A DNA stretch of 64,000 nt from Rebecca billardiae RCC1528 (taxonomy: Eukaryota; Protista; Haptophyta), in the NCBI GenBank assembly GCA_965240325.2, contig OZ251249.1, positions 310,001 to 374,000 of the forward strand, read 5' to 3'. The notes under the pieces are model-generated. The model was not told the origin of the DNA, did not search any database, and saw only the letters and a program-made list of their open reading frames with translations. The position numbers and the translations under genes were made by a program. This document shows, one piece after another, positions 1 through 51,208 of the stretch (position 1 is the stretch's first letter; each line of letters opens with the position of its first letter).

Positions 1-2824
1 GCGCCGCGGCGGTGGCGCGGATCGTCGGCGCGGCGTGGGCGCGGCTGCGCGCGCGCGCGCTCGCGTCGGGCGAGCTGCTCGCCGCGGCGGAGGCCGGCCC
101 GGAGATGGCTCGGATCCTGGCCGCGGACGCGCGCGTGCCGTTACGTAGGGTGTACGCAGCGCTCGGCGCTCCGATGGCGGAGGAGGAGGCGGCGGCGGGC
201 GGCGGCGGCGGCGGCGGCGAGCCTGGCGGCGGCGCGGCCGTCGCCGACGCCAACGCCGCGCACGCCGGCGGGACCGCGGCGCAGCGCGCGCTCGCCGCGG
301 CCGACGCGGCGCGCGGCGCGGCGGACGCGGCCGCCGCCGCGGCCGCGCGCGGCGGTCGGGCGTCGGGCGCGGCGATGGGCTCGGCGACGGACGCGGACGC
401 GGCGTGGGTGCGCGCGCTGTGCCTGCGGCGCGGCGCGCGGCCGGCGGTCGGGGGCGTGCTCGCGAGGCCGGCGCGCGCGGCGCGCGCGGACGCGGTGGCG
501 AGCGCGCTCGGTGCGGACCTGCGCGCGCTGCTCGCGGCCGACGGCGGCGAGGGCGGCGACGGCGGCGGCGCGGCGGCGGCGGCGGCGGCGGCCGCGCGCG
601 CGCTGCGCCGGCCGCACCTGCTGCTCGTCTCGGCCGGCGCCGGCGCCGACGGGCTCGGCGTGTTCCGCCGCTCGCTCTGCGAGCGCGCGCCCGCCCTGCG
701 CCACGCGCTCGCGCACAGCGCGCGCGCCGCGCGCGCCGCGCACGGCGGCGGCGCGAGCGCCATCTGTCTGACGCTCGAGGCTGCGGTGGCGGACGCGCCG
801 GCGCTGCTGTCGCGGCGCTGGGGCCTCGTGCTGCTCGACGGCGTGGAGGCGCACGCCGCGCCCTCGGCCGCGGCGGCGGAGGAGCCGGCGGCGGAGGGCG
901 GCGCGCGCCAGCCGTGGCACTGGTGCGCGCTGCTTGCGAGGCTGCGCTGCGACGCTCGACTGCTCGGCGTGGGCGGCGCCGGGCTGCCACTGTCGTGGCT
1001 CGGCGGCAGCGAGCCGCTTGGCGCGGACGCGGAGGAGGAGGACGAGGTAGCCGCCGGGGACGCGGCCGCCGCGGGCGCGGGCGCCGCGGGCTCGGAGGCG
1101 GCCGTCGACGTCGGCGACGTGCACTCGGGCGCCGCGGACGGCGGCACCGGCGGCGGCGGCACGGCGGCGTGTGGCGCGCGCGCGCGCGCCGCCGCGCCCG
1201 CGCTGCTGCTGCTGCGAGCGCTGTGTCCCGCCGCGGCCGCGTCTGCGGCGTGCGCGGAGGGCGACGACGCGGCGGCGGCGGCGGCGGGCGGCGGCGCGGC
1301 GCAGCTGCTGCGACGCCTCACGCGCGGCGGCGCGCCGGCGCCCGCGCCGCCCGCGCCCGCGCCCGCGCCGGCAGGCGCGGACGCGGACGGCGCGGACGCG
1401 CCCCTCGCAAACGTCGAGATTCTGCCGGTGGACCTCTCGCGCCGGCAGCGCGGCGCGTACGCGGCGGCGCACGCGCGCGCCGCCGCCGCACCCGCGGCGT
1501 CGGTGGAGGGCGGCGTCGGCGGCGCCGGCCGCGCGCGCGCGCTCGCCGCCGCGCACCTGCTCGCTACGCTGCGCGCGGCGGCCCTCACGCCGTCCGGCGC
1601 GGCCGGCGCGGGCGGCGACGACGGCGGCGCCGACGGCGGCGCCGACGGCGGCGCCGAGTGCGCCGAGGAGCCCCTGCTCGCCGCGTCGGCGCTGTGCGTG
1701 CGCTCGCTCGCGCTCACGTGCCCCGCGCTCGCCGCGTGCGCGCCCCCTCGCTGCGCCACGCTCGGCGCCACGCTCGCCCCCCTCGGCTTGTTCCTCGTCG
1801 AATCGTGCGATCTCGATTCTTACGACGCCGTCCGCGCGGCGACGCTGCGCACGCGCACCAACGCGCTCGTCGACGTGCCGATGCGCCGCGCGGCCGCGCT
1901 CGACGGCGGCGGCGGCGGCGGCGGCGGCGCGGGCGGCGCGGGGCCCGGGCCGGCGCTCGGCTCCACGCTGCGAGGCTTCTCTGACGCGCAGCACGAGACG
2001 CGAATCTCCTGGCGCCGCCGCGTGCGCGGCTGGGTCGCACTGGCCAACGAGGCGCGCTGCTTGCGCATGCCGCTGTACGGCGCCGGGCTGCGCGCGTCGG
2101 CGGCGCTGCCCGCGGCGCACGCGTGCGTGGCGACGCGCGCCGCGCGCCGCGGCACGCCGCCGTCCGACGCGCTCGCCGCGCTCGTCGGCGTCGCCGCCGC
2201 GTCGACGGCGGCGGCGCCGCGCGCGCGCGAGCTGCTGTCCGCGCGCACCGCGCGCGTGCTCGCGCCCGCGCCCGCGCTGCTGCTGACGCGCGGCGGCGCG
2301 TGCGGCGGCGCGGAGGGGGAGGCGGCGGGTGGTGCGGTCGTGGGCGCGCCGCGCCACCCGCCGCCCGCGCCGCCGCGCGCGCTCGCAGAGGCGCGCGCGC
2401 TCAGCTGCGCGCTGTGGTGCCACCTGCCGCGCGCGGCGGACGCGGCGCGCGTGGGCGGCGCGGCGCGCGCGGCCGCGGCCGCGCTGCGCGCGCTCGCGCC
2501 CGCGCACGGCCGCGCGCGCGCGGACGGCGCGGCGCGCACGCTGCGCGCGGCGCGCGGCCTCGCCTGCGCCGCCGACCCCGCCGCGCTCGACGCGCTGGCG
2601 TCCGCGCTCCTCCGCGCCGGCGTGCGCGCCGTCCGCGCGCCGCTGCGTGGCGGCGCGCTCGGCGGCGCCGAGGCTGTGCGCGCGTTTGCACGCGCGTGCG
2701 CCGAGCCGCGCGCGCCGCGCGTCGTCGTGCTGCTGGTCGAGCTGCCGCGCACGGCGGCGGAGGCGGCCGCGGCGGGCGGTGCCTTGGACTGGCGGCCGCT
2801 CGCCGACGTTGCCGCGGCCGCTGA

Positions 2825-2866
<42 letters not shown>

Positions 2867-3441
2867 CAACGGCGGCGGCGCGGCAGGCGGCGGCGGCGGC
2901 AACGGCGGCGGCGGCGGCAATGGCGGCGGCGAAGGCGGCGGCGAAGGCGGCAGCGCTCTCTTTGACGCGGCTCTGCTGCTCGACGCGCCGGCGGTGGCAG
3001 CCGCGGAGCCGGCGGCGGCGGCGTGCGCGCGCGCCGCGCGGCTCGGCGGCGCACCGCCCGCCGCGCGCACCATCGTCTGCGTCGCGCGCGGCACGGCTGA
3101 CGAGCGGCTGCTGATGCTGTCAGCGGCGGCGGCGCCGCCGCCGCCGCAGCAGCCGCAGCAGCCGGGTGCGGCGGTGCGCGCGGGCGCGCAGCACGGCGGC
3201 GCCGAGGGCTTCGAGGCCGCGTGGGCCGAGGCGACGCCCACGCTGCGCCCCGTCCGTCCGCACGGCGCCGCCGCCGCCGCCGCCGCAGCCGCCGCCGCCG
3301 CCGCCGTCGACGTTGCCGCCGTGCTCGCCGCCGACGCGGCCGCGCACAAAGTGGGCGCGCGGCCGCCGGCGGCGCCGCCAGCGCCGGCGGCGCCGCCGAC
3401 GCCCGCCGCGCGCGCGCCGCCGACGCTCGACTCGACGCCGA

Positions 3442-3472
<31 letters not shown>

Positions 3473-3778
3473 GAACAGCTCACGCGGCCGGCGCGGCGGC
3501 CGCGGCGGCGGCGCCACCGCGGCCGCGGCCGCGGCTCGCGCCGCCTCGGCCGCGGCGGTCACCGGCGGCGCGGCCGCGCACACAAAGTCGCTGGCGGGCG
3601 CCGGCGCGACCGGCAGCTCGGAAGCCAGCGCGGCCGCGGCGGCGGGCGCCGCGGACTCGGCCGCCGCCGACGGCGGCGGCGGCGGCACCGCCACGCAGCT
3701 GCAGAGCGTCGCATGGGCGCGCGCGCTCGACGCGGCGCACGCCGCGGCCGCCGCCTCGCGCCCGCGGCCTCGGCTGAG

Positions 3779-3811
<33 letters not shown>

Positions 3812-3995
3812 AGCGCCCGCCGCGGCGCGGCTCGGTGGGGCGTGCGCGCGCAGCGACGATGGCGAGGGCGACAGCGAGGCCGAGTCGGTCTCGTCCTCCT
3901 CCTCCGCCGCCTCCGACTGCGGCGCCGCCGCCGACGACGCCGACGACGCCGACGCCGACGTCGAGATGGCCACCGCCACCGCCACCGCCGACGCC

Positions 3996-4028
<33 letters not shown>

Positions 4029-4447
4029 AGTGACGCGTGCTCGGCGGACGCGGAGGGCGGCGCGGAGGGCGCGCGCCGCGCGCGCTGGGCTGCGCGGCTG
4101 CGGCCGGTGCAGCGCTGGCAGCTGAGCCAGCTCGCACGCCAGCTCGCCGACGAGGCGGAGGCGGATGCGGACGCAGCGGCGGACGCGGCGGCGGCGGACG
4201 CGGCGGCTGCCGCGCCCGCCGCTTCCGCGGCCGCGCCCGCCGCCGCGTCGTGCGCCGGCGTGGCGGCGGTGGCGGCGCCGCCGAGTGAGGCGGAGGCGGC
4301 CGCCCTCGCCGCGCTCGCGCGCCTCACGTCGCGCGCGCCCGCGCAGCAGCCGGACGGCGCCGCCGCCGCGGGCGCAGGAGGCACGCTTTGCTATTGGCGT
4401 GGCGGCGGCGGCGACGGCGGCACCGGCGGCGGCGGCGAGGCGGAGGC

Positions 4448-4492
<45 letters not shown>

Positions 4493-5127
4493 GGCCGTGG
4501 GCTACGACACGCCGCCGGCGCCGCCCTCGCCCGCGTCGGCGGACGGCGGCGGCGCGAGCGCCGCGGCCGACGCCGCGCACGCCTCCGGACTCGCCGGACT
4601 CCGGCTGTCGCTCTGGCTGCCGCCGTTTGCGCCCGGCGGCGGCGGCGGCGGCGCCGCCGACGACGCCGACGGCGGCGTGCCACGCGTGCGCGTCGACCCG
4701 ACCATCGGCGCGCACGCGGGCTCGGGCGGCGTCGTCCAGCTCGCGTTCGCCACCGCGCTGCACACGCACGGGGCCGACGCGGTGCTCGAGGCGCTCGGGC
4801 TCGCGGCGGGCGGCGCGCGCGCGCGCGCCGCGGGCGCGGGCGGCGGCGCGCACGCGCGGCGCGGCGGCGCGGCGGGCGGCGGCGGCGCCGCCGCCGCGCA
4901 CGGCGGCGGCGGCGGCCCGCTCGGCCGCCGCTCCGACAGCTGGGACTCGGAGGACCAGGAGATGGCGGAGATCTTCGGCGTGCTGCCCGCGGCCGCGGCC
5001 GCGCGCGCCGCCGCGCTCGGCGGCGGCGCGTCCGCGCTGCTCGGTGGCGCCGTTTCGTCAAAGGCGAGTAAGCGCCGGCTGGGCGAAGACAAGGCGTTCG
5101 AGAAGCGCTCGCACAAGCGCGGCGCGA

Positions 5128-5159
<32 letters not shown>

Positions 5160-8100
5160 TCGGTCGCGGCGGGCGGCGGGCTCTTCTCCGCGGCGGCGCG
5201 CGGCGCGTCGGGCAACGCCGCGCTCGCCGCCGCCGCGCAGCGCGCGCGGCTGGCGCAACAGCAGAAGGGCGCGGCGGCGGACGGCGCCGCGCCGCGCGCC
5301 GTCGAGCCCCCCTGGTCTGCGGCGGAGGACGCGCTGCTGTTGCGCACCGTCGGCGCGTACGGGCTCGGCGCGTGGGGGCTGTGCACGGCGGCGCTCGGCG
5401 CGGTGCACGGCTCGCGCCCGCGCTCCGCGCGCGCGTGCGCCGAGCGTTGGATCGCCTTCTCGCCCGCGGCGCAGACGGCGGCGACGCAGCGCGCCGCGCT
5501 CGGCGCCGCGTCTGCGCTGCCCGCGCCGGACGCCTATGGCCGCGCGCCCTCGGCGCAGCCCGCCGCCGCCGCGGCGCTCGGCGGCGGCGGCGCGGCGGGC
5601 GTGGGCGGCGCGGCGGGCGGCGCGGGGACGGGCACCTCTGGCGGTGGCCTGCTCACGCACGCCGACGTGGCGCTCGCCGACGCCGCGGCCGCGCGCGCGC
5701 TGCGCGACGCGCGGCCGGGTGCGCTCGGCTCCGCGCCTTCGCTCTTCTCGCCGCCGCCGCCCGCCGCGGCGGGCGCGGGCGGCGGCGCGGCGAGCGCGGG
5801 CGGCGGCGGGCCCCCGGTGTTCCGCGCGGCGCTCGCGCTGACGCACGGCCACGCGCAGCGGCTGCGCGCCGCGCTCGCCGCCTCGCTCAAGGACATCCCG
5901 GGTGCGGTGCCAGGGTCCATGGGCGGCGGCGCGAGCGGACAGCCGTTCACGCCGCCGGCGGAACACCCGAGTCACGCGCTCGGCGGCGGCGGCAAGGGCG
6001 GCGGCGGCGGCGGCGGCGGCGGCGGGCGCGGCGCGCCGATCGCCGCAGACCCGCTCGCCCTCGACTTTGCCGCCGCGCTCGGGGAGGACGTGGACGAGCC
6101 GGCGGCGGCGCCAGCCGCGGCGGACGGCGGCGCGCCAGACTCGCCGCGACGCGCGGCGCGCGCCGCCGCCGAGCGCGCGCGCGCCGCCGCCGCCGAGCGC
6201 GCGCGCGCGCCGCCCGGCGGCGGCGCGCCGGGCGCGGGCGGCGCGCTCGGCGGCGCGGGCGGCGCGCTCGCCGCGCCCTTCCTGCGCCCGATGGCGCCGG
6301 CGTTCCAGCCGGGCGGCGCGGCGCTCGCGGCGAAGGCGGCGGCCGCTCGAGGTGTGTTCAGCGCCGCCGCGCCGCCGCGCCGCGCGCCCACCGCGCCGCG
6401 CTCGCGCGCCCATCGCGCCGCGCCGCGCGCGGCTCCGCTGACACGCCTAGGGTCGGGTGAGGGGAAGGGTGACGCGGCCGCGTCGCTGACCCGCCGCGCG
6501 CGCACCCCTCCTCGCGCGCGCGCGCGCTCGCTCGCCGCAGCGGCTGGCGGCGCGGCCGGCGCGGCCGGCGCGGGCGCGGCGGCGGGTGGCGGCGCCGGCG
6601 CGAGCAAGGCCGGTACAAAGACCGCCGCGCCGCGCCGCCCTTCCAGCAAGGCCGCTGCCGCCGCCGCCGCCGCCGCCGCCGCGGGCGGCGAGCAGCCCTC
6701 GCCGGCCAAGTCGCCGTCCAAAGGTGCGTTGTGTGCGCGGGCCGGGGGGAGGGTGAGGGCTAGGGCGTGGCTGTGGCTGTGCGCGCATGCTTGTTTATTG
6801 TTTTTGTTTCTTTTGATATTTTTTCCTGACGCTTGTGCGTGGAGGCACGTGCGTGCGGTGCTGTGTGTGCGTGGCACGCGTGCGTGCGTGTGCGCGCGCG
6901 CGCGCCGCGCGTCGGCCGCTCCGCTCCGCCTGCGCCATGCGGCGCCCCCGCGCGAGCCGCGGCGCGCCGGTGTCGCGAGCCGCCGTGCGCGCGCCACGCC
7001 CGCCCCCGCGCGCGCCGCGGCGCTCCGCTCACACGCACACACCGCGCGCGCCCGCGGCTGCGGTGGCGCGCGCGCGCAGGCGGCGGGCGCGCGGGCGGCA
7101 AGCGGCCGCAGGGCCAGGCGGCGGCAAAGGCGGCGGCGGGTGCAGCGCAGCCCGCGGCGACGCTCACAGCCGCGCAGCAGCAGCAGCAGCAGCGCGCGGC
7201 AGCCGCCGCCGCCGCCGCCGCGGGCCGTCAGCCGGGCGCGGATGGCGCGCAACCCGCCGCCGCCCTCGGCGCGGCCGGCGCGGCCGCGCAGGCCGCGGCG
7301 GCGGGCGGCGGCGCGGCCACGCCGCAGCAGCAGGCACGGCGCGCCGCGCGCGCGCGTCTCGCGCTGCCGCCGCCGCGCGCGCGCCGCCGCCGCCGCACGC
7401 GCACGCACGCGAGCGCACAGCACAACACGGCGCCGGTCTCGCGCGCTCACGCGCACACCACCGCACGCACGCGCGCGCGCCGCCCGCGCCCGCGCGCGCC
7501 GCCCGCAGGCGCTCGCCGCGCGCATCAACGCCGCGCGCGCCGCCGCGGCCGCGGGCGCGCAGGGCGGCGCCGCGCGGCCGGGCGTGCCGGGCAAGGGCCT
7601 GCCGATGGCGCTCCTCATCCAGGTGTGTGCACTGTGCGAGATTGCGCCGAGATTGCGCCGAGATTGCGGGCGTGCGCGCGGCACGGCGGCGAGGCGTCCA
7701 AGTGTCGCGCGGTGTGCCTGCTGATGGGCGGCGGCCGCGTGCCGCGCGCCTGCGGGCGCTGTGCGCTGCGCGCGGCGCGCCGCTCTGCGCGCCGCCCGCC
7801 ACGGCGCGCGGCGGTGGCGGCGGTGCGCTCACCCACGCGCCCTGTGCTTGCACCCGCCCGCCCCGCCCGGCGGCGTGTGCGCGCCCGCGCCACCGCTGCC
7901 GCCGCGGCCGTGGCCGCATCGCGCAACGGCCGACACCGCTGCGCGCCTCGCGCCCGCTCGCAATCTCGGCGCAATCTCGGCGCGATCTCCCGGCAGGAGA
8001 TCCAGAACAAGCCGGCGCTCAAGCCTGAGATCCAGCGCATCGTGCAGCGCGACGACCTGAACGAGGCGCAGAAGATGGCGGCCATCCAAGCGCTGATCAA

Positions 8101-13156: not shown

Positions 13157-15076
13157 TCAACTGCCGCCCGGCGAGTAGTTCTGCTGCTGCGCCGACGACA
13201 GCAGCTTGTGAGCACACTGTGGCTGCCGATGGTGCAGCTCCGGCGTCGGCTCGGCGGCGGCGGCGGCGCGGCCCTGGCCCAGCGCCGCCAAGGACAGTCG
13301 GCCGTCCGCGCCGGGCGGCTCGCGGCGCACGAGCGCGCGCTTGGGCGAGCCATCCCACGCGACGCTGCGCCGCCGCTCGTCGGCCGCCGAGCTGATCTGC
13401 GCCGACGCGGCGAGCACCTCGCACAGATGCTGCGAGAGCGCGTGGTCCACCGCGGCGCCCAGCGCGGCGACGACGGACGACTGCCGTGGAGGCGGTGTCG
13501 GCGGCGGTACCGCCGCCGCGCGCGCCGCGCCCGCGCCGCGCCGCGCGCGCGCCGCCTCCGGCTGCGGCGGCCCGGAGATGTCGAGCGCGCGGCACGCCAC
13601 GAACGCCGCCGCGGGCGCAAGCGATGGCGCGGGCGGCAGCGCCGCCGCCGCCTCCGACTCGCCCTCCGCATACCCGTCGCAGTCCGGGTCGGCAACTGCC
13701 GGCGCGCCCGCCAAGCCCACGCCGAGCCCGAGCAGCGAGCCGCCGGCCGCGTGCGCCGCGCGCAGGTGCGCGGCGTGCAGCTCGAGCGCGCACCGGTCCG
13801 TCAGCAGCGCGGTGGTGTCCGCCTGCAGCCCGACGAAGCGCGCCAGCCGGCCGCGCGCGTCGAGGAGAGGCGCAAAGTGCAGCAGCATCAGAAAGGCCGA
13901 GCCGTCGCGCCGGTAGTTGAGCAGCTCGGCCGTGCACGGCTGCGGCGGCCGGACGGGCCGAGTTGGGCCCGGACTCGCGCCCGCGCGGCTGCTGCACGGC
14001 TGCTGCTGCCGCGCCGCGCCGGGCAGGTGCGCGTGGTGCACGGCCGCGTCCGCCAGCTGCGCCTGCCGGAGCGCCGCGTCCGCCAGGTGCGCGTGGTGCA
14101 CGGCCCGGCTCACTTCCTTCACCTTGGAGCAGTCAGTGGCCGGACCCTGGAGAAGCCGGCAGTTTCGCCCGACGAGCTCGGGCAGCGGGTAGCCCGTGAG
14201 CGCGCAGAACGCCTGGGCGGGGCGCGCGCACGCACGAGGAGACGCACGGGGCGGGCGGGCGGAGGAGCGTTGGTGAGTGAGCGGTTGGAAACCGAGAGAG
14301 CGTGGGACCAAAGGACCATCAGTATTTGATGGTCCTTTGGTGGGACCACCAAGTGGGGGGGGCCTGGCTTCGTGCGCGAGCGCGCGCGCGCGCGCTCTGC
14401 GCGACGGGCGGCGACGCACCGGCGAGGCGTGGACGATGGGGTTGTCGTGCTGGTTGGGGTCGGTCACGACGAGCGTGCTGCGCAGCGCCGCGAACGTCTT
14501 TCGCAGCTGCGGCGCGGCGCTCGGCTGCAGCAGCAGCGCCGCCGCCGCCGTCTCCAGCTCAGCCGCCGTCGCGTCGCGCGCGGCGGCGCCGTCGACGAGG
14601 AAGGCGAGGCGCGCGTCGACGGCGGAACCGAGGCGCACGCCATCCGCGGGCACGTGCAACTCGCCCTCACGGCAGGCGGGCGCGCCGGCGGGCGCGCGCG
14701 GCGAGCGGAACGCCACGCGCCGTGCGAACGGCTCGCCCGTGGCGAGTGCGCGCGCGAGCGCGTCCGCCGCGCCGTCCGCGGCGGGTACGACCCAGTCGGA
14801 GAGGCGCTCGCCACAGAGAGTGCCAGGCTCGAGGCCGAGGGCGGTGGCGAACGCCTCGGAGCACTCGCGCACGCTGCCATCCGCCACCTCGAGCACGAGG
14901 AGGCGCGAGCCCACGAGGCGCGCGAGCTGGCCGCAGCGCACGGCGGCCAGCTGGTGGCACAGCAGGTTGTCGACGGAATAGTCGCGACGGATGGTGGGCG
15001 GGGTCTCGTCGTCCTCGGACGCGGGCTCGCGGAGCGCGCACTTGCGCTTGGAGGACTTTCGGCGCGAGCGCGGCAT
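13157..15076 (-). CDS. PAS + LOV domain blue-light photoreceptor-like protein
   Basis: LOV signature LVVTDP-DNPIVHASP/AFCALTGY-ELVGRNCRLLQGP...ELLNYRRDG...FVGLQ with the photoactive Cys. In-frame 207-nt GT-AG intron 14419-14213. Upstream PAS-like segment (DGSVRECSEAFATALGLEPGTLCGERLSDWV). Confidence 0.9.
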   Translation of the reverse strand: MPRSRRKSSKRKCALREPASEDDETPPTIRRDYSVDNLLCHQLAAVRCGQLARLVGSRLLVLEVADGSVRECSEAFATALGLEPGTLCGERLSDWVVPAADGAADALARALATGEPFARRVAFRSPRAPAGAPACREGELHVPADGVRLGSAVDARLAFLVDGAAARDATAAELETAAAALLLQPSAAPQLRKTFAALRSTLVVTDPNQHDNPIVHASPVRRRPSRRARARALAHEARPPPLGGPTKGPSNTDGPLVPRSLGFQPLTHQRSSARPPRASPRACARPAQAFCALTGYPLPELVGRNCRLLQGPATDCSKVKEVSRAVHHAHLADAALRQAQLADAAVHHAHLPGAARQQQPCSSRAGASPGPTRPVRPPQPCTAELLNYRRDGSAFLMLLHFAPLLDARGRLARFVGLQADTTALLTDRCALELHAAHLRAAHAAGGSLLGLGVGLAGAPAVADPDCDGYAEGESEAAAALPPAPSLAPAAAFVACRALDISGPPQPEAARARRGAGAARAAAVPPPTPPPRQSSVVAALGAAVDHALSQHLCEVLAASAQISSAADERRRSVAWDGSPKRALVRREPPGADGRLSLAALGQGRAAAAAEPTPELHHRQPQCAHKLLSSAQQQNYSPGGS

Positions 15077-16830
15077 CGGCGGTGTGTGCGTGGCGTGGCC
15101 TCGGGGTGCGAACGTCGCGTCGGCGACTCCAGGGCGGCGACTTCAGCAAGCGGGGTTGCGAGGTTGAATCTCCTACGCAGTAGGCTAAAAGGCGAAGCGG
15201 TGTTAGGAGTGCGGAGGCGAGATCCCCTGCTATTCACATCGGTTCAAGACAGGCAGAGCTCGGGGATGGGTTCAGAGTTCGGGTGGCTCAGATAGTATCG
15301 CTAATATCTCGCTCTCTTGCCGCCGTTCGCTCGTAAAACAGGGGTTGTTCAAGCTTTCCGCCCCGCGCAACAAGAATGCATCCTTCCCCGAATCCCAGCA
15401 GGAATCTTGGCTCTTGACATCGGTCGACTTATGAACCATGTATGGAGATTCGATCTCGCTTGGATCTCACCCTGAACTGCTGCACCATTGTCAGTCCATC
15501 ACTTGAACGAACTATATGATATTTCCGAGATTCCATCCGCTTGTACTAGTATGAAACCGCGGGTTGCGGCCTTGGGGGTAATGTAGTTATCGATTGCCCA
15601 GTCTGGAATAACCACGCGACGGAAACGCCGACGACGAGATCGGCCGCGGCGAGCGCGCAAGCGCGCCGAGTCCCGCCGTTGGCAGAGACGAGGCACGCCG
15701 AAGCCTGAGGATCGCCGTCGCAGCGTCGCTGCCAGTGCCACTCAGATTGCCTGTGCGTTGCCCCTACTCTTCCGGCCGCCGCTAAGCCGAGCAGTACCGC
15801 GCGCGGCGGATGGCACGCGGTCAGACTCTCTATCGGGGTTGGCGCTGCGCGTCAACTTGGGACTGGAAACATGTAGTTTAAACACCTGATGGCTCGCGGC
15901 CGGTAGCCCGAGCTCGGAACTTCTGACGCTGCTATGGGCGCAAGCGACGGCGCTCCGGGGGCGCAGCGGCGGGGCTGACTGACGACGCGCGCGCGACGCG
16001 CGTGTGCACGACGGTCTGCGGCGGGTCCCGTGCCGCGGAGTGCGCGCTGCCATGACTGGCCCGTCTGCAGCACCACGCCCCGCGCTGTGAGTGAGAGTGT
16101 GGGCCGCGCCAAAGCCAGAACGGGGACGGCACTCCGCCGGCCTGGCCGTCTGCCGACCAGCCCGCGGCCGCCTGCTGCAGCTCGGGGAATCGCGCGCTCG
16201 CCGCTCGCGCGTCACGGCGGGGCGACGGGGCGGCCCGCTGCCGCCTGCGCGCAAGTGCCGTCCGCCGCACGTGCCGCTTCATCCGCTGACACCGCACGCG
16301 AGCCGCTCGTCGCGTGCAGTGCAGCTCGAGCCCTCCGCCGCCACTCCTGTGCCGGCGCCACGCCTCGCGCTCGTGCTCGAGCTGAGGCGGTTCGTGTCGC
16401 CCGAGCCGGCCGGGGCGGGTTCGCGCACAGGTGAGCCACCTCCCGAAAATAAACAGGTAAAAGTATCATCATACGTATTGTACGTCGTACGGCATACAGG
16501 TACGGCCCTTGATACAGGAATTACCGGCTCAACAATTCAAGACCAGCTAAATTCGATTGAGCTGATTGCCAGATGAATACTGCGCACGAGGATCGGAGCC
16601 GTTCGGTGAGCCGTCGTCCGATCGACGCGGTTTCCCGAGCGGCCTGCGGCTTGCCCCAAACCGCGGCTACCGCGTCTGCCGCGGCGCACTTTCTAGTAGC
16701 CAGGAAAGTCGGAACCACCTTGAACCAAGCGTCCACACGGCGGCTGCATAGTGAACCTTGCAGCTTCGTCATGCGCGGGGGGTGGGGCGAACCGCCCCCG
16801 TGGCACGGCGCGGGCGGGCTCCGCCGGGGC

Positions 16831-19409
16831 ATGGCGCGCAGCGCGGCGGCGCGGCCGAGGCGGCCCGACCCGCGCGCGCGCCGCGCGCGCGCCGCGCGAG
16901 GCCGCGCAGCCCGCCTGCTCGCGCCGGCGCTCGCGCTGCTGCGCGCGCCGGCCGCGGCGCGCGCCGACATGGTCGTCGAGGCTGGCCCGGCGCGACTGCT
17001 CGGGCTGGCGGTGCCCGCCGTGCCGTTCGCGTTCTCGCGGCAGTCGTACGAGCTGCGCGCGCCGCTCCTCTTCACGCGCGAGCCCGACTGGGACTTCTCC
17101 ACCTGCCCGCCCGCCTACCGCGGCGCGCGGCCGCTCGCGGGCGCGATCGTTGTGACCGAGCGCGGCGGCGACAACGCGTGCTCGTTCGAGATGAACGCGC
17201 GGGCGGTGGGCGAGGCGGGCGGCGTGGCGTGGGCGCCGTGGTACGAGGTGGCCGCGATCCTCGACGGCACGCCCGGCCTCTGGGCCAACGCCTGGCGCGA
17301 GGGCGACACGCGCGGGCCGACAGCGGCTGTCGGCTTCACGTGGTCGTCGCGCGCGGCGCAGCCGATCGCGCACGCCGCGCGGCGCGGCGAGGAGGTGGTG
17401 GTGGCGCTCACGCCGTCGGCGAACGAGTGGGAGGCGATGTGGGCCTCGCCCGCCTGGCACCTCTGGGCCGCGCTCCTCGCCACCTACGCCCTCGCCGTCG
17501 TCGAGCTCGCAGGCGCGCAGCTGTACGCGTTTGTGCGCGCAGACGGCGGATTCCTGCCAAAGTCGATCGCGCACTCGCTGCTGCTGATCGAGATGGTGCT
17601 CAACCTGCAGCGCGCGCTGTTCTTCGCGGTGGACCCGCTGCTCTCGCGCGGCCTCGCCTCGCGCCCCGTCGCCGTCGTCCTCCTCACCCAGTCCTACTCG
17701 TTCGGCGCGCTCACCACCGGGCTGTTTCTTCTCTACTTTGTGGACGCGGCGAGTTCTCGCGGTGTGGCCTCGCTCGTGCTCACGACGCGCGTGGCGCGGC
17801 GCGCGCTGCTCGCGCTGTGCGTGGTCGCGGTGGTGCTCGACCTGCTGATCGGCGCGGTGGTGGTGCTGCGCTTCTCCGAGCTCGTCGCGCCCGCCAAGGT
17901 CGCCATCTCGCTGATCGCGCTGCCGGCGCTGCTGCTTGCGCTCAGCGCGCACGCGGAGCGCACGGCGCGCCGCTCGCTGCCGCGGCTGCCGCAGGCGCTG
18001 CTCGAGCGGCTGATGCGGCGGATGCGCATGAGCATCGCGCTCTCGGCGGCGGCGCTCGCCGCGGGCGGCTGCGCCGTCTGGGGCCTGCAGGCGCCGTACC
18101 GCGCGCTCGTCGTCTTCGGCGCGCTCTTCGGCGCGCTCACCGGTTGCTCCTACACGCAGGTCTCGGCCTTCAAGCCGCTCGCCTGCGCTGTGCCCGCGGG
18201 CCCGCTGCGCCTCACGTGGCTCGGCGTGGCGAGCGGCGCGCGCGCGCTCGCGCGCGCGAGCGGCGCGCACGCGCTGCTCCGCCGGTGCGCGTGCTTGCGC
18301 GCGTGCGCGCGCGCCGCGCTCTGCTCCGCCGCCGACGAGGCGGAGGCGGGCGCCTCCGTCTCGCCGGCCGGCACCGGCACGGCGACCGCGTCGCCGGCGT
18401 CGCAGCCCGGCTCAGAGCACCGCGGCGCGGCGGCGGCGCATCGGCCGCCGGTGCGGTACCTCCCGCCGCCGAAGCGCGTGCTGCTCGGCGTGCGTCCGGG
18501 CTACCTCCGCGCGTGGGCCGAGGCGCAGGCCATCCCGCCCACCGCTTCCTCCTACGACGTCTCACGGCATGTGTCGACGCACACGCGCGCCAACGACACC
18601 AGTCTCGTGAGCGCGCACGCGCACGTGCTCGGCGCCGACGGGCTGCCGGTGGTGGGCACGGCGACGCTGGTGCGCGCCGCCGCGCGCCGCGCCGCGCGCG
18701 AGGGCCGCGCCGTGCTGCCGCCCCGCCGCTGCCTGCCCGCGCCCCCTTCCCTCCGCCGCATCCGCCGCCGCGCGGCTCACGTGGCGCGCCCGCGCGCCCC
18801 GCGCGCCGCCGCGCGCGCGCGCGCGCGCCACCCGCGCCGTCCCGCGCTGCGCTGCGCTCTGGCCTGCCACAGTTCATCTCGCACGCGCACGGCTGCGGCT
18901 TCTGGCGCATGCTCGACGCGGTGGAGCAGTACCTCGCGCAGCACAAGCTGGGCCCGCGCGGCGCGTACGTCTGGCTCGACTCCTGGTCCCTCAAGCAGCA
19001 CCGCCAGTCTGAGGAGGTGGCCTTCATTCCAGCGGTCGAGCAAAGTATCGGCCATGCGGTTTTGGTGCTCGACCCGTGGGACGCGCCGCTGGCGTTCACG
19101 CGCGCGTGGTGCCTGTTCGAGGTGGTCACCGCGCTGGACGCCGGCGGGCGCTTCGGCGTCAGCCTCCCGCCGGACGAGCGCCTCCGCCTCGTGCGCGCGC
19201 TGCAGGCGGACCGCGCGGGCACGCTGCAGTCTCTGGTGCCATTCAACGTGCGCGACGCGCAGCTGTCCGACGAGGACGACCGCGCGACGCTGCTCTCGCT
19301 CATCCAGCGGCGCTTCGGCGCGCCGGGCACCGACGGCACCGCCGAGGTGAACGAGCGCACCCGCGAGGCCGTGTGGAACGCGCTGGCGGCGTTCAGCTGG
19401 CAGATCTGA
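16831..19409 (+). CDS. Membrane receptor-like protein: signal peptide, PA domain, 7 TM helices, C-terminal TIR/HET-like domain
   Basis: PA-like GAIVVTERGG-CSFEMNARAVGEAGG. Seven hydrophobic segments at ~17455-18175. Intron 18670-18872 joins VGTATL to FISHAH...VWLD...IGHAVLVLDPW...TRAWCLFEV. Start codon uncertain (16771 or 16831). Confidence 0.8.
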
Positions 19410-19827
19410 CGGCGGGAGGACCGGAGGCAGAGTGCCGAGACGGTCCGCCCGTGCGGGCCGCGGCGGAGCGCCGGCAGGATGGCGGGGCCGCCCGCGGGCC
19501 CGGGCGGGGCGGACGGCTGACGCGTCAGTGGCGTTGTCATTTCGACACTTGCGCCAGTGAAGTCCTGCTCAGTCTCTGTCTCACGTGCGCACTCTCGTCA
19601 GACTTGACTGCCGATTCGTCGACGACACATCACTATCAGTGTCACACCTGCCATCGTCGCGGTGGCGGCGCTTAACTCGTTGGCCGGTCTTTTGATTATT
19701 GAAGCATTATAAGTCTAAGACGACGGGTTATTCATGAAAAGTGCGCGGCTTCGGCCGCCGCGGGCGCGGCGGTGCCGGGTCCGGGACTAGTATTTGTCGA
19801 CCGGCCGCGTGTGTCTGCGGACAGACG

Positions 19828-20370
19828 TCAAGAAGCGCCCGCGGGTGCGCCGGCGTCCGCCGCGGCGGCGTCTGGCGCGGGCGCCGGCGTGCGCCACGTC
19901 GAGAGCTGGCACTTCTTGAAGTGCGGCGCCAGCGCCGACTTGCGCGCCGGCTTGCTCGCGAGCGCGGTGGGAATGTTCTCAGGCTGCTCCACCCACAGCT
20001 TGTGGTCGACGCCGGCCTCGGCGAGGCGGAGGGCGAGGTTGCGGAGCTGCGGCTCGCCCTTGACCTCGAGGACGGCCTTGTGCATGCCGTCTACCGCGCC
20101 CGGCGCGATGTACGCGCGCACGTCCTCGTCGTCGAGGTGCTCTGCGACGGCGGCGAGCGACGCGTGCGCGCCCTGCGCGACCAGCGATCCGAGCGGCCAG
20201 CCTTCCTTCTCCTGCAGGTCGCGGCGCAGCACGACGTACTGGAAGAGGGGGTCGTCTGCGCTCGACATCGACACCGAGCGCGCCACGCGCGGACGAAGCG
20301 CCGCAGGCGCGCGCACGACGGCGGCGGAGGGCCGGACCAACGCGAGGGCGGCGGCCAGACCGGCCCGCAT
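19828..20370 (-). CDS. PTRHD1: Peptidyl-tRNA hydrolase 2 family (PTRHD1-like), with organelle-targeting leader
   Basis: QYVVLRRDL-WPLGSLVAQGAHAS-MHKAVLEV-HKLWVEQPENIPTALASKP. N-terminal MRAGLAAALAL followed by an Arg/Ala/Ser-rich extension. Confidence 0.9.
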   Translation of the reverse strand: MRAGLAAALALVRPSAAVVRAPAALRPRVARSVSMSSADDPLFQYVVLRRDLQEKEGWPLGSLVAQGAHASLAAVAEHLDDEDVRAYIAPGAVDGMHKAVLEVKGEPQLRNLALRLAEAGVDHKLWVEQPENIPTALASKPARKSALAPHFKKCQLSTWRTPAPAPDAAAADAGAPAGAS

Positions 20371-20501
20371 CGTTCGGCCCCGAAAGCCCGGTCCGGTGCT
20401 CTGCGCAGGCGGGGCCGTCGTTCCGCGCAGTTCGCGGCTGGCGGGCGCGCGCCGCGCACGCACGGCGCCGGCACGCGAGGTCGCGAGCGCGGGAATCGAG
20501 G

Positions 20502-21572
20502 ATGGCGCGTGTTGCAGGCGCGCTGCGCGCGCTGCTCCTCGCGACGCTCGCCGCGCGCGGGCTGGCGGGCAGCGGCGCGGCGAGCGCGGCGACGACGGTG
20601 GACATGGACCTGCGCAGAGCCATCTCCGGCGCCGCCGCCGGCGCCATCTCCAACGGCCTGCTCCACCCGCTCGACACGGTGAAGACAGTGCGGCAGTCCA
20701 ACCCAAAGGCGTTTCCGGGAACTTTCCGGACGATCCACCGGATCCTCTCGACGGACGGCCCGGGCGCGCTGTACGGCGGGATCGGCACGGCGATGCTCGG
20801 CGCGATGCCCTCGTCCTTCGTCTTCTTCGGCACGTACGAGGCCGTCAAGAGCCGGCTGAGCCGCGCGGCGGGCAACTGCACCGCGCGCACTCGCGCGCAG
20901 ATCCACGTCGCCTCGGCGGCGTGCGGGAACTGCGCGAGCTCGCTGATCTACGTGCCGAAGGAGATGATCAAGCAGCGCCTGCAGGCGGCCAAGGTCGCGC
21001 GCGTGCAGCTCAGCGTCCAGTCCATCGTCACCTCGATCGTACGCGAGCACGGCGTGCGAGGGTTGTACTCAGCGTACACCGCGACCATCTTCCGGAACAT
21101 CCCGACGACGGTGCTCAACTTCCTGATCTACGAGGAGCTGAAGCACCAGCTCGCCGCGCGGCTGGCCGTCACCGACGAGGACTCCTTCCTCAAGTCGTGG
21201 TCCATGGTCTGCGGCGCCATCTCCGGCGCGAGCGCGAGCGTGCTCGTCACCCCGGTCGACGTGTGCAAAACACGACTTGCGACCGGCCAGTACCTGGCGA
21301 GGCTTGGGCTGCGCGGCTCGCTGCTGAAGCTCGCGCGGGAGGAGGGCGTGGGCGGGCTGTTCGCCGGGGCGAAGGCGCGGATGCTCGGCTCCGCGCTCTT
21401 CTCCGCCATCGGCCTCTCGTCGTACGAGGCGTGCAAGCACCTGCTGCGGTGCGACCAGCCGGTCGCGGCCGGCGCCGCCGCGAGCGCCGACTGCGGCGCG
21501 GGCGGCGCCGACGGCAACTGCGGCACCGTTGCGCGCCGCCCGCCGTGGCGGCCACGGCGGTGGACGGACTGA
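20502..21572 (+). CDS. Mitochondrial carrier family protein (SAM-carrier-like) with N-terminal signal peptide
   Basis: Three Px[DE]xx[KR] signatures (PLDTVKT, PKEMIKQR, PVDVCKTR) and GLY/GLF-type motifs. Hydrophobic leader MARVAGALRALLLATLAARG. Confidence 0.9.
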   Translation: MARVAGALRALLLATLAARGLAGSGAASAATTVDMDLRRAISGAAAGAISNGLLHPLDTVKTVRQSNPKAFPGTFRTIHRILSTDGPGALYGGIGTAMLGAMPSSFVFFGTYEAVKSRLSRAAGNCTARTRAQIHVASAACGNCASSLIYVPKEMIKQRLQAAKVARVQLSVQSIVTSIVREHGVRGLYSAYTATIFRNIPTTVLNFLIYEELKHQLAARLAVTDEDSFLKSWSMVCGAISGASASVLVTPVDVCKTRLATGQYLARLGLRGSLLKLAREEGVGGLFAGAKARMLGSALFSAIGLSSYEACKHLLRCDQPVAAGAAASADCGAGGADGNCGTVARRPPWRPRRWTD

Positions 21573-41321: not shown

Positions 41322-42228
41322 CGGGAGGCGGCTGTGCGGGCCGGGCGCGAGGCAGGCGCGCGCGCGCGGCCCGCGCACGGCGGCCGCCCGCCGGCCGCGG
41401 CCGGAGGCGGCGCGGCGGCGGCGCGGTCACTCGCGCGCCTGCCTCGGCCGGGCGCGGTGGCGTGCGTGGCGGCCGGGCGGGCCCTAGGGAGGTTGGACGG
41501 CGCGTGGAGACTACGCCTTCGCGGTGGAGGGCGCCGCGTGCAGCTCGCGCGGCGCCCGAGTCGCTCGGCGTCGGCGCGCCGCAGTCGGTGCAGCCGGTGT
41601 GACCCGCGCCAGACGGCTGTCAGCTGGCGCTGCGCGGCGTGCGGCGAGTGGTGCACGGCGGCCGGCTTGGCCCTGGTGGCGGGCCAAGCTGCTGCTGCCC
41701 GAGCCGCGGCCGGCTGCGGCCGGCGCTCGAGGCCGCGTGGCGCCGCCGACCCGCGTCCGCGGTGATGGCGGGGTGATCCGCGGACCGTGACCGCCCGGAC
41801 CGCCGACAGACCGCGGCGGATCCGCGGGGCCCGCGATCCGGGCGGCGATCCGATGACCGATTGGCGATTCCGGCCGCCATCACTGACACTGTGATTGATC
41901 AGTGGAGAGTCCATGGCAAGGCATGCTTAGGCGTGATTCGTCGTCTACTACTGCTAGTAGCTGCCACTGACGACGGGCCCGGGTCGGGTGCGCCATCGCC
42001 AGGATCTCGACGGCTGCCGCGGCATCACTGTTTGAGTCACTGCGCCACGGACCCTTGGTCCGGGGGAGTACTCACCCCCCTCCCGCCTCCGCTCCGGATC
42101 CGCAGCTTGTGCAGCGGCCAGCGCGGCTGGAAGAGTCGCGAGACGACGAGTCCGGGGCTATCCCGGACCCGTGGCCGAGGTCGCTGACCTCCAGCGCGCG
42201 CGCTGGCCGCTGGCCGCGAGCGAGCACG

Positions 42229-45200
42229 ATGGGCGAGGCTGACGAGCCGCCCGTCGACCTCTTCGCGGGCGAGGCTCGGCGCCTGCGGATCGACGAGCAC
42301 GAGTGCGCGCGCCGCGCGCCCCCGCCGCGCGCGGCGCGCGCGCGCCGCGTGCGCCCCGCGCCAGCTGGCTGCCGCGCGCGCGCGCGGCCGCGCGCGCGGC
42401 CGCGGGCAGTGCGCGCATGCCGCCGCGCGCGCGCACGCCGCACGCGCGCGCGTGCTGACGCGCGCCTCCTCGCGCGGCGCGCGCGCGCACGGCCCGGCGC
42501 GCAGTGACGTGCGCGCGCGGCTGCGAGCGCTCGCCTCGCAGATCGAGTGGCTGCAGCAGGGCCGCTCCGTTCTCGACTGGCGGCCGCCGACGCCTCCGCC
42601 GCCGCCTCGGCCGATTTACTCGGCGTCGGACTCAGAGGACGAGGAGGGCGAGGAGGGCGACAGCGACGACGAGTCGGACGGGGAGGAGGACGGCGGGTCG
42701 GCGGACGGCGGCGGGCGCGGCGCCGAGCAGGACGAGCCGGACGGCGCGCGCGCCAAGCCCGCCGCCCGCGGCGCCGCGGCCGCGGCCGGCGCGCGCCGGG
42801 CGATAGTGGATGCGAGTGACGGCAGTGACGACGAGGAGGAGGCGGCGGCGGAGGCGGGCGGCGAGGGCGAGGAGGGCGAGGAGGACGACGACGAGGAGGT
42901 GTCCTCCGATGACTCGGACGACGACTCGGACTCGGACTCGGGCTCGGAGGAGGCGGAGGCGGAGGCGGAGGCGGGCGCGGCCGGCGGCGGCAGCCGCGGG
43001 CGGGGTGGCGGCGCGGCCGCGCGCGGGCGCGGCGCGCACGGGCGCGGCGGCGCGGGCGCGGGCGCGCGAGGCGGCGGCGCCGTGGCGCGCGGCGGCGGCG
43101 CCGGCAGCAGGGGCCGCGGCGGCAGCGGCGGCGGGCGAGGCGGCGGGCGCGGCCGCGGGCGCGGCGCCGGCGCCGAGCCGGCGCAGCGGCCGCAGCCGAC
43201 GCGCGTCAACGGCCCTCGCGCGGCGCGGCCGCCGTCCGGGGCGGATCGCGCGTCGACGCTGCGCAGCCGCGCGGCGGCGGACGACGCGCCCGCGCCCGAC
43301 GGCGCGCCCGCCGCGGGCGGCGGCGCCGTCGGCGCCGTTGGCGGCGGCGGCGGCGTTGGCGGCGGCGGCGGCGCGGCCAAGCCGCCGTCCGCCGCGGCTG
43401 CTGTGAGCGAGGCGGAGAAGGTGCAGTTGCTCCGAGCAGACCGGTGCAAGATCGAGCACGACGGCGCGCTCGCCAAGCTGCGCCGGCTCTCGCGCGTCAC
43501 CGCCGAGCCGCTCGCGCACCGGTGAGCGCGCCGCGCCGCGCGCCGCGCCCTGCGCCGCGCGCCTCGCGCCGTCTCGCGGCCGCGCCGCGCGCGCGCACAA
43601 CACGCACGTGTCGGCTCACGCGCCGCGGCCGCGCCCGCCGCCCGCCGCCCGCCGCCCGCCGCCCGCGCGCAGCCCGCGCACGCACCGCAACTACCTGCTC
43701 GAGGAGATGGCGTGGCTCGCCAAGGACTTCTCCGACGAGCGCAAGTGGAAGCTCGGGCAGGCGAGGCGCGTCGCGCGCGCCGTCGCCAAATGGCACGAGG
43801 ACTCGGAGCGGCGGCGGGAGAAGGCAGCGGCTGATGTGCTCGGCGCGCAGCGGCGCACGGCGGGACGCATCGCGCGGCACGTGCGCGCGTTCTGGGCGCA
43901 GGTGGAGCGCATCGCGGTGTGGAAGCACGAGATTGTCGTCGCGAAAATCCGCGAGCAGACGCGGCAGAAGCAGCTGGACTTCCTCGTCGGTCAGACGGAG
44001 CGCTATTCGTCGCTGCTCATGCAAGACATGCAATCTGCTGCGCCCGGCGGCGGCGCGGGCGCCGGCGGCGGCGCGGCGGATTCGGGCGGCGGGCGGGGCG
44101 ACGCGCCCGCCGCGGCGCCCGCGGCGGACGCGGCGGACGCGGGCGCGGCGCTGGACGGTGGCTCGGGCGCGCGCGCGCCGCCGCGCCGGCGCACGCGTGT
44201 CTCGGGGCGCGGCGCGGACGAGCCGCTGCTCGAGCTGCCGAGACTGCCGGATCGCGCGGACCGCGCCAAGCGCTCGCGGCTCGAGCGGCGCACGGGCACG
44301 CCGCCGCGGCCGGGCGCCGCGCCCGCGGGCGCGCCGGCCGCGCGCGGCGCGCGCTCCGAGCGCGGTGCGGGCGGCGACGACGCGACGTCGGGCGCGGCGG
44401 CGGAGGAGGAGGAGGAGGGCGCCCACGGCGCCGCCATGTCTGAGGGCGAGGACGGCTGCGGTGACGTCGCGCCGCCCGCGGGCGCGCCGCCCGCCGCCGC
44501 GGGCGCGCCGCCGGCCGGCGGCAGCGCCGACCCGCAGGCCGCGGCGGGCGCGGCGGCGGGCGCGGCGGCGCCGCCGGCGCCGCCGCGCGGGGACTGTCTG
44601 ACCGGCTTCGAGCCCGGCGCGCTGCCGGCGGGACTGGAGCGCGCGGCGGGGCGCATGCCGCCGCGCGCGCTCGGCGCGCCCGCGGGCGCGCACGAGCGCG
44701 ACGCGCCGGCCGCGGCCGGCGCGCGGCGCGAGCCCGGCCGCGGCCGCGGCCGCGGCCGCAGCCGCGCCGCCGCCGCCGCCGCCGACTCCGCCTCCGACGC
44801 CGACGACGACGACGACGGCGGCGAGGGCGCGCGCCTGGCCGAGCTGCCCGAGGGCGAGCGGATGCAGGTGAGTGCGCGCGGCGCGCGTGGCGCGTGGGGC
44901 GGCGCGTGGCGCGTGCGCGCGTGGCGCGCGTGGCGCGTGCGTGCGTGGCGTGTGGCCGGCCGGCCGGCCGCGTGCGCGCCCCTCTGACCTGCGCGTGCCA
45001 CGCACTCCGCTGCTGCTTGCGGCTGCGGCTGCCGCGCGCGCGTAGGCGGCTGTGGACGCGGCGGCCGCCTCGATGCCCACGGGCCACACCCTCGCCACCA
45101 CGCGCACCAAGGTGGCAGTCCCGCACCTCATCCGCGCCACGCTCCGCGAGTATCAGCACGTCGCGCTCGACTGGCTCGTCTCGATGTACGAGAAGAACCT

Positions 45201-47239: not shown

Positions 47240-47305
<66 letters not shown>

Positions 47306-50300: not shown

Positions 50301-51208
50301 GGCGGCGCTGATGCTGGACGAGGAGGACCGGCGGGAGGCGGAGGCGGCGCGCAGATACGCCGCGGAGGAGGAGGTGCGTGTGCGCGCGTGTGTGTCTGCG
50401 CGTGCGCGGTGTGCGTTCGTGTGCGCGTGGCGCGCATTGCGTGTGCCCCTGTGTGTGTGTGCCACGCGCGGCGCTGGCGCTGAGGAAGCAAACACTCTAT
50501 AGGTTAAGGCAACCGAGTCGCCCCTCCGGGGGCGAGGTGCGGACAACCGACTGTTTCAGCCCATCTGAGCCAACGCCGCGCGCAGGCACCGGGCACCGCA
50601 CGCCGTGCGCACGCGCGTGTGTCCGCCTGCCCACGCGCGCCCGCTGCCTGCCTGCCCGCGCCCGTCTAACCCTAACCCACCCTCACCCGAACCCTACCCC
50701 TCAACGCAGGCGGAGTTTGACGAGACCATGCCGCTGCAGGCCGCGGACGGCGCCGACGGCGCGCCGCCGGGCGGCGCCGAGGGCGGCGGCGGCGCGCGGC
50801 CCCCGGGCCGCTCGGCGGACGGCGGCGGCGGCGCCGAGCCCGGCGGCGCCGACGGCGGCGCGCCGCTCGTGCCGCTCGCGCGCGAGGACTCGGCGCTGCT
50901 CGCAGAGATGGGCGTGGCGGACCCGACGGCCGCGGTGCCGGGCGGCGAGGGCGGCGGCGGCGGGATGGGCGGCAGCGCGGAGGAGGTGGAGGCCATGCTG
51001 ACGCCAGTGCAGCGGTGCGCGCGTCCGCGCGCGCACCGTGGCGTTGCGGGCGGCGGTGCCAAGCGCCGTGCAGCCGGGCCGCGCGCGCACGCACGCCGTG
51101 GCGGCGTCGCGTGCGCGCGCGGCCCCAACCGCATACACTCACCCTCGCCCTCCCCTGCACACGCACGCACACACACACACGCGCACACGCACACGCACAC
51201 ACACACAC

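Follow-up and report, generated by a model that had tools for sequence, protein, structure and literature searches.

A predicted fusion of a PA ectodomain, a GPCR-fold seven-transmembrane core and a TIR-like module in the haptophyte Rebecca billardiae: a candidate one-component receptor

Viral infection kills great numbers of marine microalgae. To our knowledge, almost nothing has been learned of how they detect threats, and we know of no haptophyte surface immune receptor that has been characterized. A gene of the haptophyte Rebecca billardiae RCC1528 raises the question of whether such an alga may join an extracellular binding domain, a receptor core and a TIR-type effector in a single protein. 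The gene occupies positions 16831 to 19409 of the forward strand in a 64,000-nucleotide stretch of DNA (GenBank assembly GCA_965240325.2, contig OZ251249.1, positions 310,001 to 374,000), here called the window, whose numbering is used for the gene and its neighbors. From the computational analysis reported here, it is very likely that the predicted product of 791 amino acids carries a protease-associated (PA) ectodomain outside the cell, a seven-transmembrane (7TM) core with the fold of a G protein-coupled receptor (GPCR), and a TIR-like module of ~245 amino acids in the cytosol, all on one polypeptide. That it acts as a one-component receptor, in which ligand binding would drive Glu-dependent nucleotide cleavage by the tail, is given a probability of roughly 0.5 and rests on analogy with enzymatic TIR domains.

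Gene model and splice junction

A preliminary description of the window had modeled the gene with two exons, and these coordinates held. Two long overlapping forward frames, 16573-19350 and 16758-19409, are linked by the proposed intron at 18670-18872 (203 nucleotides, GT..CAG, phase 0, 89% GC). Exon 1 thereby spans 16831-18669 and exon 2 spans 18873-19406, with 178 amino acids, followed by a TGA stop codon at 19407-19409. In-frame ATG codons are also present upstream of the modeled start, the open reading frame (ORF) beginning at 16573. GC content was 73 to 75% around the locus and 77% in the gene, with 95% GC at third codon positions (GC3) in the modeled frame. A (GC)n run was observed inside the intron at about 18820-18838.

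The junction was compared with paralogous loci of the same assembly (G000, 72 Mb, 41 contigs), in which a six-frame search with the exon-2 product gave 111 matches; 19 loci were taken for the comparison. Most of the close paralogues examined had no intron at the position of the target's intron, and in those whose match begins at residue 1 the DNA continues through that position with no gap. The 65 conserved residues upstream of FVSHA follow the paralogue consensus 'HLLLGV..FL.EF....T..EV...LT...G.SLAE....DG.PAVG.A.L/FVSHAQ', where the slash marks the splice position, and the target across its spliced junction, 'RVLLGVRPGYLRAWAE...ADGLPVVGTATL/FISHAHG', aligned with this consensus without gaps. 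Splicing exactly recreates the family-wide junction '..A.L/F[VI]SHA'. Since the intron-free paralogues, about 20 in number, are collinear across the junction without a gap, the junction appears to be right, and joining of the exons into one predicted polypeptide was confirmed by this collinearity. The residues that are invariant or nearly invariant in the family were all intact in both exons of the target.

Full-length paralogues point the same way. In six of them (L022, L024, L025, L023, L028 and L033), one unbroken ORF is collinear with the spliced target for nearly its full length, from about residue 20 to residue 791 for L022, L024, L025 and others. One protein rather than two separate products is therefore predicted from the locus, as the preliminary description had proposed. 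Its C-terminal domain is likewise present, but the start assigned to it, at the FISH motif, was not correct: the conserved unit starts ~65 residues earlier, at RVLLGV (residue 549, position 18475). Because it begins upstream of FISH, the cytosolic module spans the intron.

The PA ectodomain and seven-transmembrane core

The N-terminal half of the protein was modeled with AlphaFold2 as the exon-1 product, using 52 family sequences (alignment A4). The mean predicted local distance difference test (pLDDT) score was 80, rising above 90 across residues 46 to 445. Residues 1 to 45 (16831-16965) form a signal-peptide-like N terminus with a long Arg-rich n-region, a hydrophobic stretch, LLAPALALLRAPAAA, and the end ARA/D; in alignment they correspond to the paralogues' signal peptides, which are shorter and more typical, and a helix was modeled at the same site (residues 14 to 38). 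The signal peptide noted earlier is thus a plausible prediction.

Residues 46 to 205 (16966-17445) were modeled as an alpha/beta domain at a pLDDT of ~95. A Foldseek search with the exon-1 model returned two groups of structures, PA domains and GPCRs, with probability 1.00 and E values from 2e-3 to 2e-2. Against the PDB, the ectodomain matched the PA domain of the vacuolar sorting receptor VSR1 (7f2i, TMt 0.68; also 9b1r and 8r4y), RNF43/ZNRF3 (TMt 0.59 to 0.69), the transferrin receptor apical domain and the PA inserts of M28 peptidases. The target did not reach the gathering score of Pfam PA (PF02225), at 14.4 bits against a cutoff of 23.9 (E 0.042); Pfam PA matches were found in 18/52 family members, with a best E value of 1.3e-4. 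The extracellular PA domain of the preliminary description was therefore recovered by modeling and fold comparison, though the target lies below the Pfam threshold, and the modeled ectodomain has the PA fold. Within it, the cysteine pair C92 and C117 is nearly invariant in the family.

The core at residues 207 to 445 (17449-18165) was modeled as seven transmembrane helices (207-238, 246-267, 278-308, 321-346, 352-382, 388-418 and 422-445), with pLDDT mostly >90. When compared by VIA-align with 48,161 chains, residues 198 to 456 matched class A, C and F GPCRs at Z 15.2 to 18.1, with 210 to 252 residues aligned at 3.5 to 4.7 Å, and the top 50 entries were all 7TM proteins of the GPCR fold. These scores exceed the caution line for helical bundles, which lies at Z ~13. 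Even at E 1, none of the 52 members matched a Pfam 7TM family. Lys and Arg residues numbered 12 in the loops facing the cytosol and 3 in the outer loops, and the same bias was seen in the family means. From this bias and the nearly invariant ectodomain cysteine pair, the N terminus is predicted to lie outside the cell and the C terminus inside, in keeping with the topology first proposed. The core is followed by two cytosolic juxtamembrane helices, modeled with moderate confidence at residues 458 to 506, and a low-complexity linker (together 18166-18474; pLDDT 30 to 83). This region varies in length and sequence between paralogues, and the linker was disordered in the model. Look-alikes in the ESM Atlas suggest that tail-less PA-7TM proteins occur as unnamed clusters in Endomyxa and Zoopagomycota.

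The cytosolic module

The module comprises a conserved N-terminal segment and a core. The segment, at residues 549 to 613 (RVLLGV...ADGLPVVGTATL; 18475-18669), is encoded by the end of exon 1, is collinear in paralogues and distant members, and corresponds to about positions 10 to 72 of the family profile. The two exon products were folded separately, so that this segment was modeled apart from its core and with low confidence. The core, encoded by exon 2 (18873-19409), was modeled at a pLDDT of 93.8 and a predicted template modeling score (pTM) of 0.89. Exon 2 encodes all four of the motifs first noted, which fall on elements of a TIR-type fold: FISH on strand A, VWLD on strand B, VLVLDPW on strand C, and RAWCLFE, within TRAWCLFEV, on helix C.

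The candidate catalytic residue is E83 of exon 2, residue 696 of the protein, with its GAG codon at 19119-19121; a Trp lies four residues upstream, at 19107-19109. In an alignment of 107 diverse family members (A3), E83 was the sole invariant column. Conserved at ≥90% were H4, W34, D36, P68, W69, P72, R77, W79, C80 and D136, and the family consensus reads F.SHAW / W.D.F...QH / LTR.WCL.E. When the module was compared by hhalign with nine of the genome's canonical TIR_2 domains (A5), the E value was 1.3e-3 and the register placed FVSHAW with FISYAW and W.D with WLD, paired the C strands, and set E83 against the invariant TIR Glu. The Glu of WCxxE, originally read as a TIR-type residue, is supported by both its invariance and this alignment.

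Structural comparison gave a homogeneous list. By VIA-align against 48,161 chains, 31 scored Z ≥5, almost all of them TIR domains or nucleoside 2-deoxyribosyltransferases (NDTs). The best was the TIR domain of RPP1 (Z 7.5, 129 residues, 3.9 Å), with SpbK, SARM1, ThsB, RPS4, TIR-1 and MyD88 at Z 6.3 to 6.8 and the NDTs 1f8x, 6evs, 7o62 and 1s2d at Z 6.1 to 7.0. The Foldseek list was headed by TIR domains at E 0.05 to 0.8 (RPPT, RPV1, SARM1, RUN1, ThsB and Hydra TRR-2). The best PDB profile match was the Paracoccus TIR protein PdTIR (3h16, E 0.16), with FVSHAW in register with FISHAW and W.D with WYD. Hence, fold prediction module by module returned a PA fold, a GPCR fold and a TIR-like fold, as the preliminary description would have it.

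Membership in the named families is another matter. The exon-2 product gave no Pfam match even at E 10 and no match in PADLOC. Among the 107 members, the most recurrent weak Pfam matches were HET (8/107, best E 4e-4) and TIR_2 (5/107, best E 6.4e-3). A scan of the genome with HET (PF06985) yielded no more than two fragments, with E values of 0.17 and 0.65. The scan with TIR_2 found at least 10 canonical domains above the Pfam cutoff, none of them at PA-7TM-module loci; examples, some as tandem pairs in long open frames, lie at C13:293189-293515, C5:1949398-1950210, C34:1015527-1015853, C13:1545244-1546164 and C10:3069773-3070066. Since the module falls below the gathering thresholds of Pfam TIR (PF01582), TIR_2 (PF13676) and HET, it is placed outside the named families, in one of its own with a TIR-like fold. 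From models and alignments, then, it is a distinct, unnamed family with a predicted TIR-like fold and motifs that resemble those of HET. The TIR/HET-like label thus describes a resemblance in fold and motifs and not family membership.

Family members in this genome and in other eukaryotes

A search of the genome with the N-terminal 485 amino acids gave 74 matches, representing ~59 PA-7TM loci as tallied from six-frame matches rather than gene models. At ~48 of the ~59, a module match followed 0.5 to 3 kb downstream on the same strand. Three of the single-ORF paralogues matched public-library predicted proteins exactly (L022, P0010; L024, P0008; L025, P0004), and the target was 28 to 34% identical to these over 740 to 790 aligned residues. 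Its nearest paralogues reached 44% identity in the tail and 37 to 40% in the N-terminal part. At these levels of identity, the target appears to be an intact, divergent member of the family and not a recent copy. Over 2,694 bases, the only public contig carrying P0004 (L066) showed no difference from the genome sequence; it has no poly(A) tail and is uninformative on expression.

The fusion extends beyond this genome. About 24 of the best 150 library matches share the N-terminal domain, the 7TM core and the module. Among them are proteins of ordinary composition from other eukaryotic assemblies, such as P0097 (640 amino acids); P0028 (617 amino acids) has the 7TM core and module only.

Some members in R. 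billardiae are loosely clustered, 7 to 60 kb apart (C19:787255-795377, C3:3108252-3129552, C24:1452904-1485412, C17:182285-220316 and C10:2077090-2134699), and most are dispersed over nearly all contigs. The loose clusters suggest local duplication.

The module was much more widespread than the fusion. An exhaustive HMMER search with a 14-sequence profile against 1.84 billion cluster representatives found 6,656 relatives at E ≤1e-3, of which 3,799 reached E ≤1e-10. A word-index search had returned no match for the exon-1 product and one short JGI protein for the module alignment; since the exhaustive search found 6,656 relatives, these blanks reflect word and length limits. In all 10 of the non-7TM relatives sampled, the module, present in some as two or three copies, preceded TPR_10/TPR_12 arrays of the kinesin-light-chain (KLC)/NPHP3 type, and most members of the family are, as judged from sequence, module-TPR proteins with KLC-type arrays. 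One of the relatives, from the diatom Chaetoceros tenuissimus, is annotated only as "TPR-like protein." ESM Atlas clusters shaped like the tail came from Haptophyta and Oomycota, the nearest being haptophyte. The remark that this type of domain usually precedes TPR modules in protists was borne out by the HMMER and Atlas results.

Soluble module proteins are also encoded in the R. billardiae genome. L069 (742-5430, minus strand) has the module and up to 22 TPR_10 repeats, L070 (2769-4985, minus strand) the module and three TPR_12 matches, L068 (3846-8999, plus strand) the module and a cyclic-nucleotide-binding domain, and L071 (2630-6379, minus strand) two tandem modules and no Pfam domain. 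In many non-7TM members, two or three tandem modules precede the TPR array (P0013, P0022, P0037, P0040, P0043, P0052, P0057 and P0094), an arrangement that may bear on self-association of the module.

Comparison with known systems

The predicted protein resembles several known systems in part. With the enzymatic TIR domains (SARM1, RPP1, RUN1, ThsB, SpbK and PdTIR), the module has in common the three-layer alpha/beta fold, the order of its elements, and matching motifs: F[IV]SH lies in strand A, W.D in strand B and W-x-x-x-E, whose invariant Glu aligns with the catalytic Glu of TIR domains, in helix C. Both occur at the ends of receptor or repeat proteins. In contrast to those domains, the module carries ~65 additional conserved residues at its N terminus and a C-terminal helical extension, and it lies below the Pfam TIR and TIR_2 thresholds. 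The three motif blocks of the fungal HET domain (PF06985) appear to be matched in layout by those of the module, F.SHA resembling ALSYxWG, yVWLD..s..Q resembling yLWIDalCIdQ and R.WCL.E resembling RGWtlQE; the module differs in its protist rather than fungal hosts and in its partners, 7TM cores or KLC-type TPR arrays where HET has NACHT/NB-ARC. We know of no biochemical characterization of HET domains.

Among receptors, the Toll-like and IL-1 types are likewise built from a binding domain outside the cell, an anchor in the membrane and a TIR-type domain in the cytosol, and activation by ligand-induced proximity is plausible both for them and for the target. They differ from the target in having one helix rather than seven and an LRR or Ig ectodomain rather than PA; the target's tail also belongs to a separate family and, by analogy, is probably enzymatic rather than a scaffold. 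The membrane proteins with PA domains, namely the vacuolar sorting receptors, RNF43/ZNRF3 and other PA-TM-RING ligases, and the transferrin receptor, share a membrane-adjacent PA ectodomain, which in their case binds peptides or proteins. Unlike the target, they are single-pass proteins with EGF, RING or peptidase partners and have neither a 7TM core nor a TIR-like tail.

A further parallel in organization is with the GPCR-bigrams (van den Hoogen and Govers 2018) of oomycetes and other protists, in which a 7TM core is fused to a C-terminal PIPK, INPP, AC, PDE or TKL domain (PMC6033456, PMC5784254). The two share an N-terminal GPCR-fold 7TM core, a putatively catalytic cytosolic C-terminal domain, expansion in protists and a ligand that is not known. 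The target departs from the GPCR-bigrams in its TIR/HET-like tail, which is outside the five described types, in its added PA ectodomain, and in matching no Pfam GPCR family. The term "TIR" has 0 occurrences in the GPCR-bigram review (PMC6033456), and a 2025 survey of GPCR families in animal relatives (PMC12716839) mentions neither TIR nor PA domains. A full-text literature search for GPCR-TIR or 7TM-TIR terms returned no paper, and no description of the architecture was found in the literature on HET/TIR-like domains in algae. The architecture had not been recognized as a described one at the outset, and the literature searched contains no description of it.

Proposed function and alternative explanations

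In the proposed mechanism, the ectodomain or the 7TM core would bind a ligand, which from comparison with other PA domains is probably a peptide or protein. Binding would alter receptor conformation or clustering, bringing the cytosolic modules together. Once assembled, the modules might cleave NAD+ or a related nucleotide with the invariant Glu as catalytic residue, by analogy with enzymatic TIR domains. The outcome would be a nucleotide signal or depletion of NAD+, leading to a defense, cell-death or self/non-self response with no intermediate G protein. Enzymatic TIR domains need self-association for activity; prediction of an exon-2 homodimer scored 0.02, which is evidence neither for nor against self-association of the module. 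Glu-dependent catalysis by the module, considered as a step of its own, is assigned tentatively, at somewhat short of an even chance, and an immune or allorecognition role is a doubtful proposal; both rest on analogy.

Several results weigh against this proposal. The similarity of the module to TIR domains is remote, its modeled fold scoring Z 6 to 7.5, which is middling on the VIA-align scale; no PDB structure matched the exon-2 model by Foldseek at E ≤0.001; the gathering thresholds of Pfam TIR, TIR_2 and HET were all unmet; and the hhalign comparison with TIR_2 carried a probability of 19%. The NDTs score level with TIR domains (Z 7.0), which bears on the substrate. In the ectodomain, mean pairwise identity among family members was 34%, against 26% for the 7TM core. 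The PA domain is thus no more variable than the core and gives no sign of diversifying ligand recognition. Finally, the PA-7TM core could signal through a G protein: a scan of the genome with Galpha (PF00503) was ambiguous, giving only partial GTPase-core matches, one of them marginally above the cutoff.

In the chief alternative, the tail would have no enzymatic activity and would serve as a homotypic adaptor that recruits soluble module proteins, chiefly those with TPR arrays, which would relay the signal much as MyD88 does for the TIR domains of Toll-like receptors. Animal TIR domains do act as scaffolds, the same genome encodes candidate partners (L069 and L070 with TPR, L068 with a cNMP-binding domain and L071 with tandem modules), and module-TPR proteins make up the majority of the family in the library. 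We nevertheless consider a purely adaptor role unlikely, though it is the alternative with most in its favor: an invariant Glu in W-x-x-x-E across 107 divergent sequences suits catalysis better than a pure scaffold, and the adaptor interaction is hypothetical. The two roles are not mutually exclusive. Catalysis might also be of a different kind, the module being an NDT-like N-glycosidase or transferase that acts on nucleosides, nucleotides or nucleic acids rather than a TIR-type enzyme that cleaves NAD+. NDTs use a catalytic Glu, and four of them (1f8x, 6evs, 7o62 and 1s2d) stood beside the TIR domains in the VIA-align list. A viral structure library likewise held no match to the module at E ≤0.001 and gave weak matches to DUF4406 and deoxyribosyltransferase-type proteins. 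The sequence signals, from 3h16, the weak Pfam matches and hhalign, favor TIR and HET instead, and TIR/HET death and signaling domains typically stand before TPR arrays or on receptors, as the module does, so that an NDT-like activity appears quite unlikely.

Two further explanations would take the protein out of signaling altogether. It could be a sorting, trafficking or housekeeping membrane protein, with cargo bound by its PA domain much as in a vacuolar sorting receptor or a PA-TM-RING ligase; the VSR1 PA domain and RNF43/ZNRF3 are among the structures closest to the ectodomain, the ectodomain is without hypervariability, and the neighboring genes (described below) have housekeeping functions. 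This would leave unexplained the ~50 paralogues at 25 to 45% identity, the GPCR-fold core and the TIR/HET-like tail with its active-site-like motif, and we regard it as improbable. Alternatively, this copy may retain its intron or be decaying, in which case the locus would yield no PA-7TM-TIR-like protein. Retention would leave the exon-1 frame open for 227 further codons, to 19350, with an Ala/Arg-rich tail and no TIR-like core, and an intron is missing here from most of the close paralogues compared. The canonical GT..AG, phase 0 intron, the exact family junction, the intact conserved residues and the GC3 of 95% make this the least probable explanation.

If the one-component receptor proposal is right, ~50 GPCR-fold receptors with a TIR/HET-like tail become concrete candidates that can be tested by mutation, a sixth effector type is added to the 7TM-enzyme fusions represented by the GPCR-bigrams, and the fungal HET and the plant, animal and bacterial TIR death domains are tied to a large unnamed protist family. 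In a broader and more speculative form, which we think possible but rather unlikely, haptophyte-type algae and some other protists would possess, in the PA-7TM-TIR/HET-like proteins, a class of one-component surface receptors not described before. In these, extracellular recognition by a GPCR fold would directly activate a TIR-type death or signaling domain that cleaves NAD+ or nucleotides. The proteins would then correspond, in protists, to Toll-like receptors and fungal HET proteins, directed against viruses or bacteria or serving self/non-self recognition, and the module family of 6,656 representatives would be a protist-wide equivalent of HET. Since the module family is large and missing from Pfam, thousands of hypothetical "TPR-like" proteins would be better annotated once it is defined.

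Genomic context

The 64-kb window contains no other member of the PA-7TM-module family. Two antisense ORFs overlying the gene (16693-18270 and 18212-19540) had no Pfam matches and were rejected as the usual open frames of DNA with 77% GC. Upstream, a 638-residue ORF on the minus strand (13157-15073) encodes a PAS-domain protein with PAS_9, PAS_4 and PAS matches. Downstream lie a PTH2-type peptidyl-tRNA hydrolase on the minus strand (19828-20703) and a mitochondrial carrier with three Mito_carr repeats on the plus strand (20502-21569). Because these two ORFs overlap by ~200 nucleotides on opposite strands, their true 5' ends must be shorter. Long stretches of 78 to 86% GC were observed at 1-8000 and 42000-57000 of the window, compared with 61 to 75% in the genic stretch between them.

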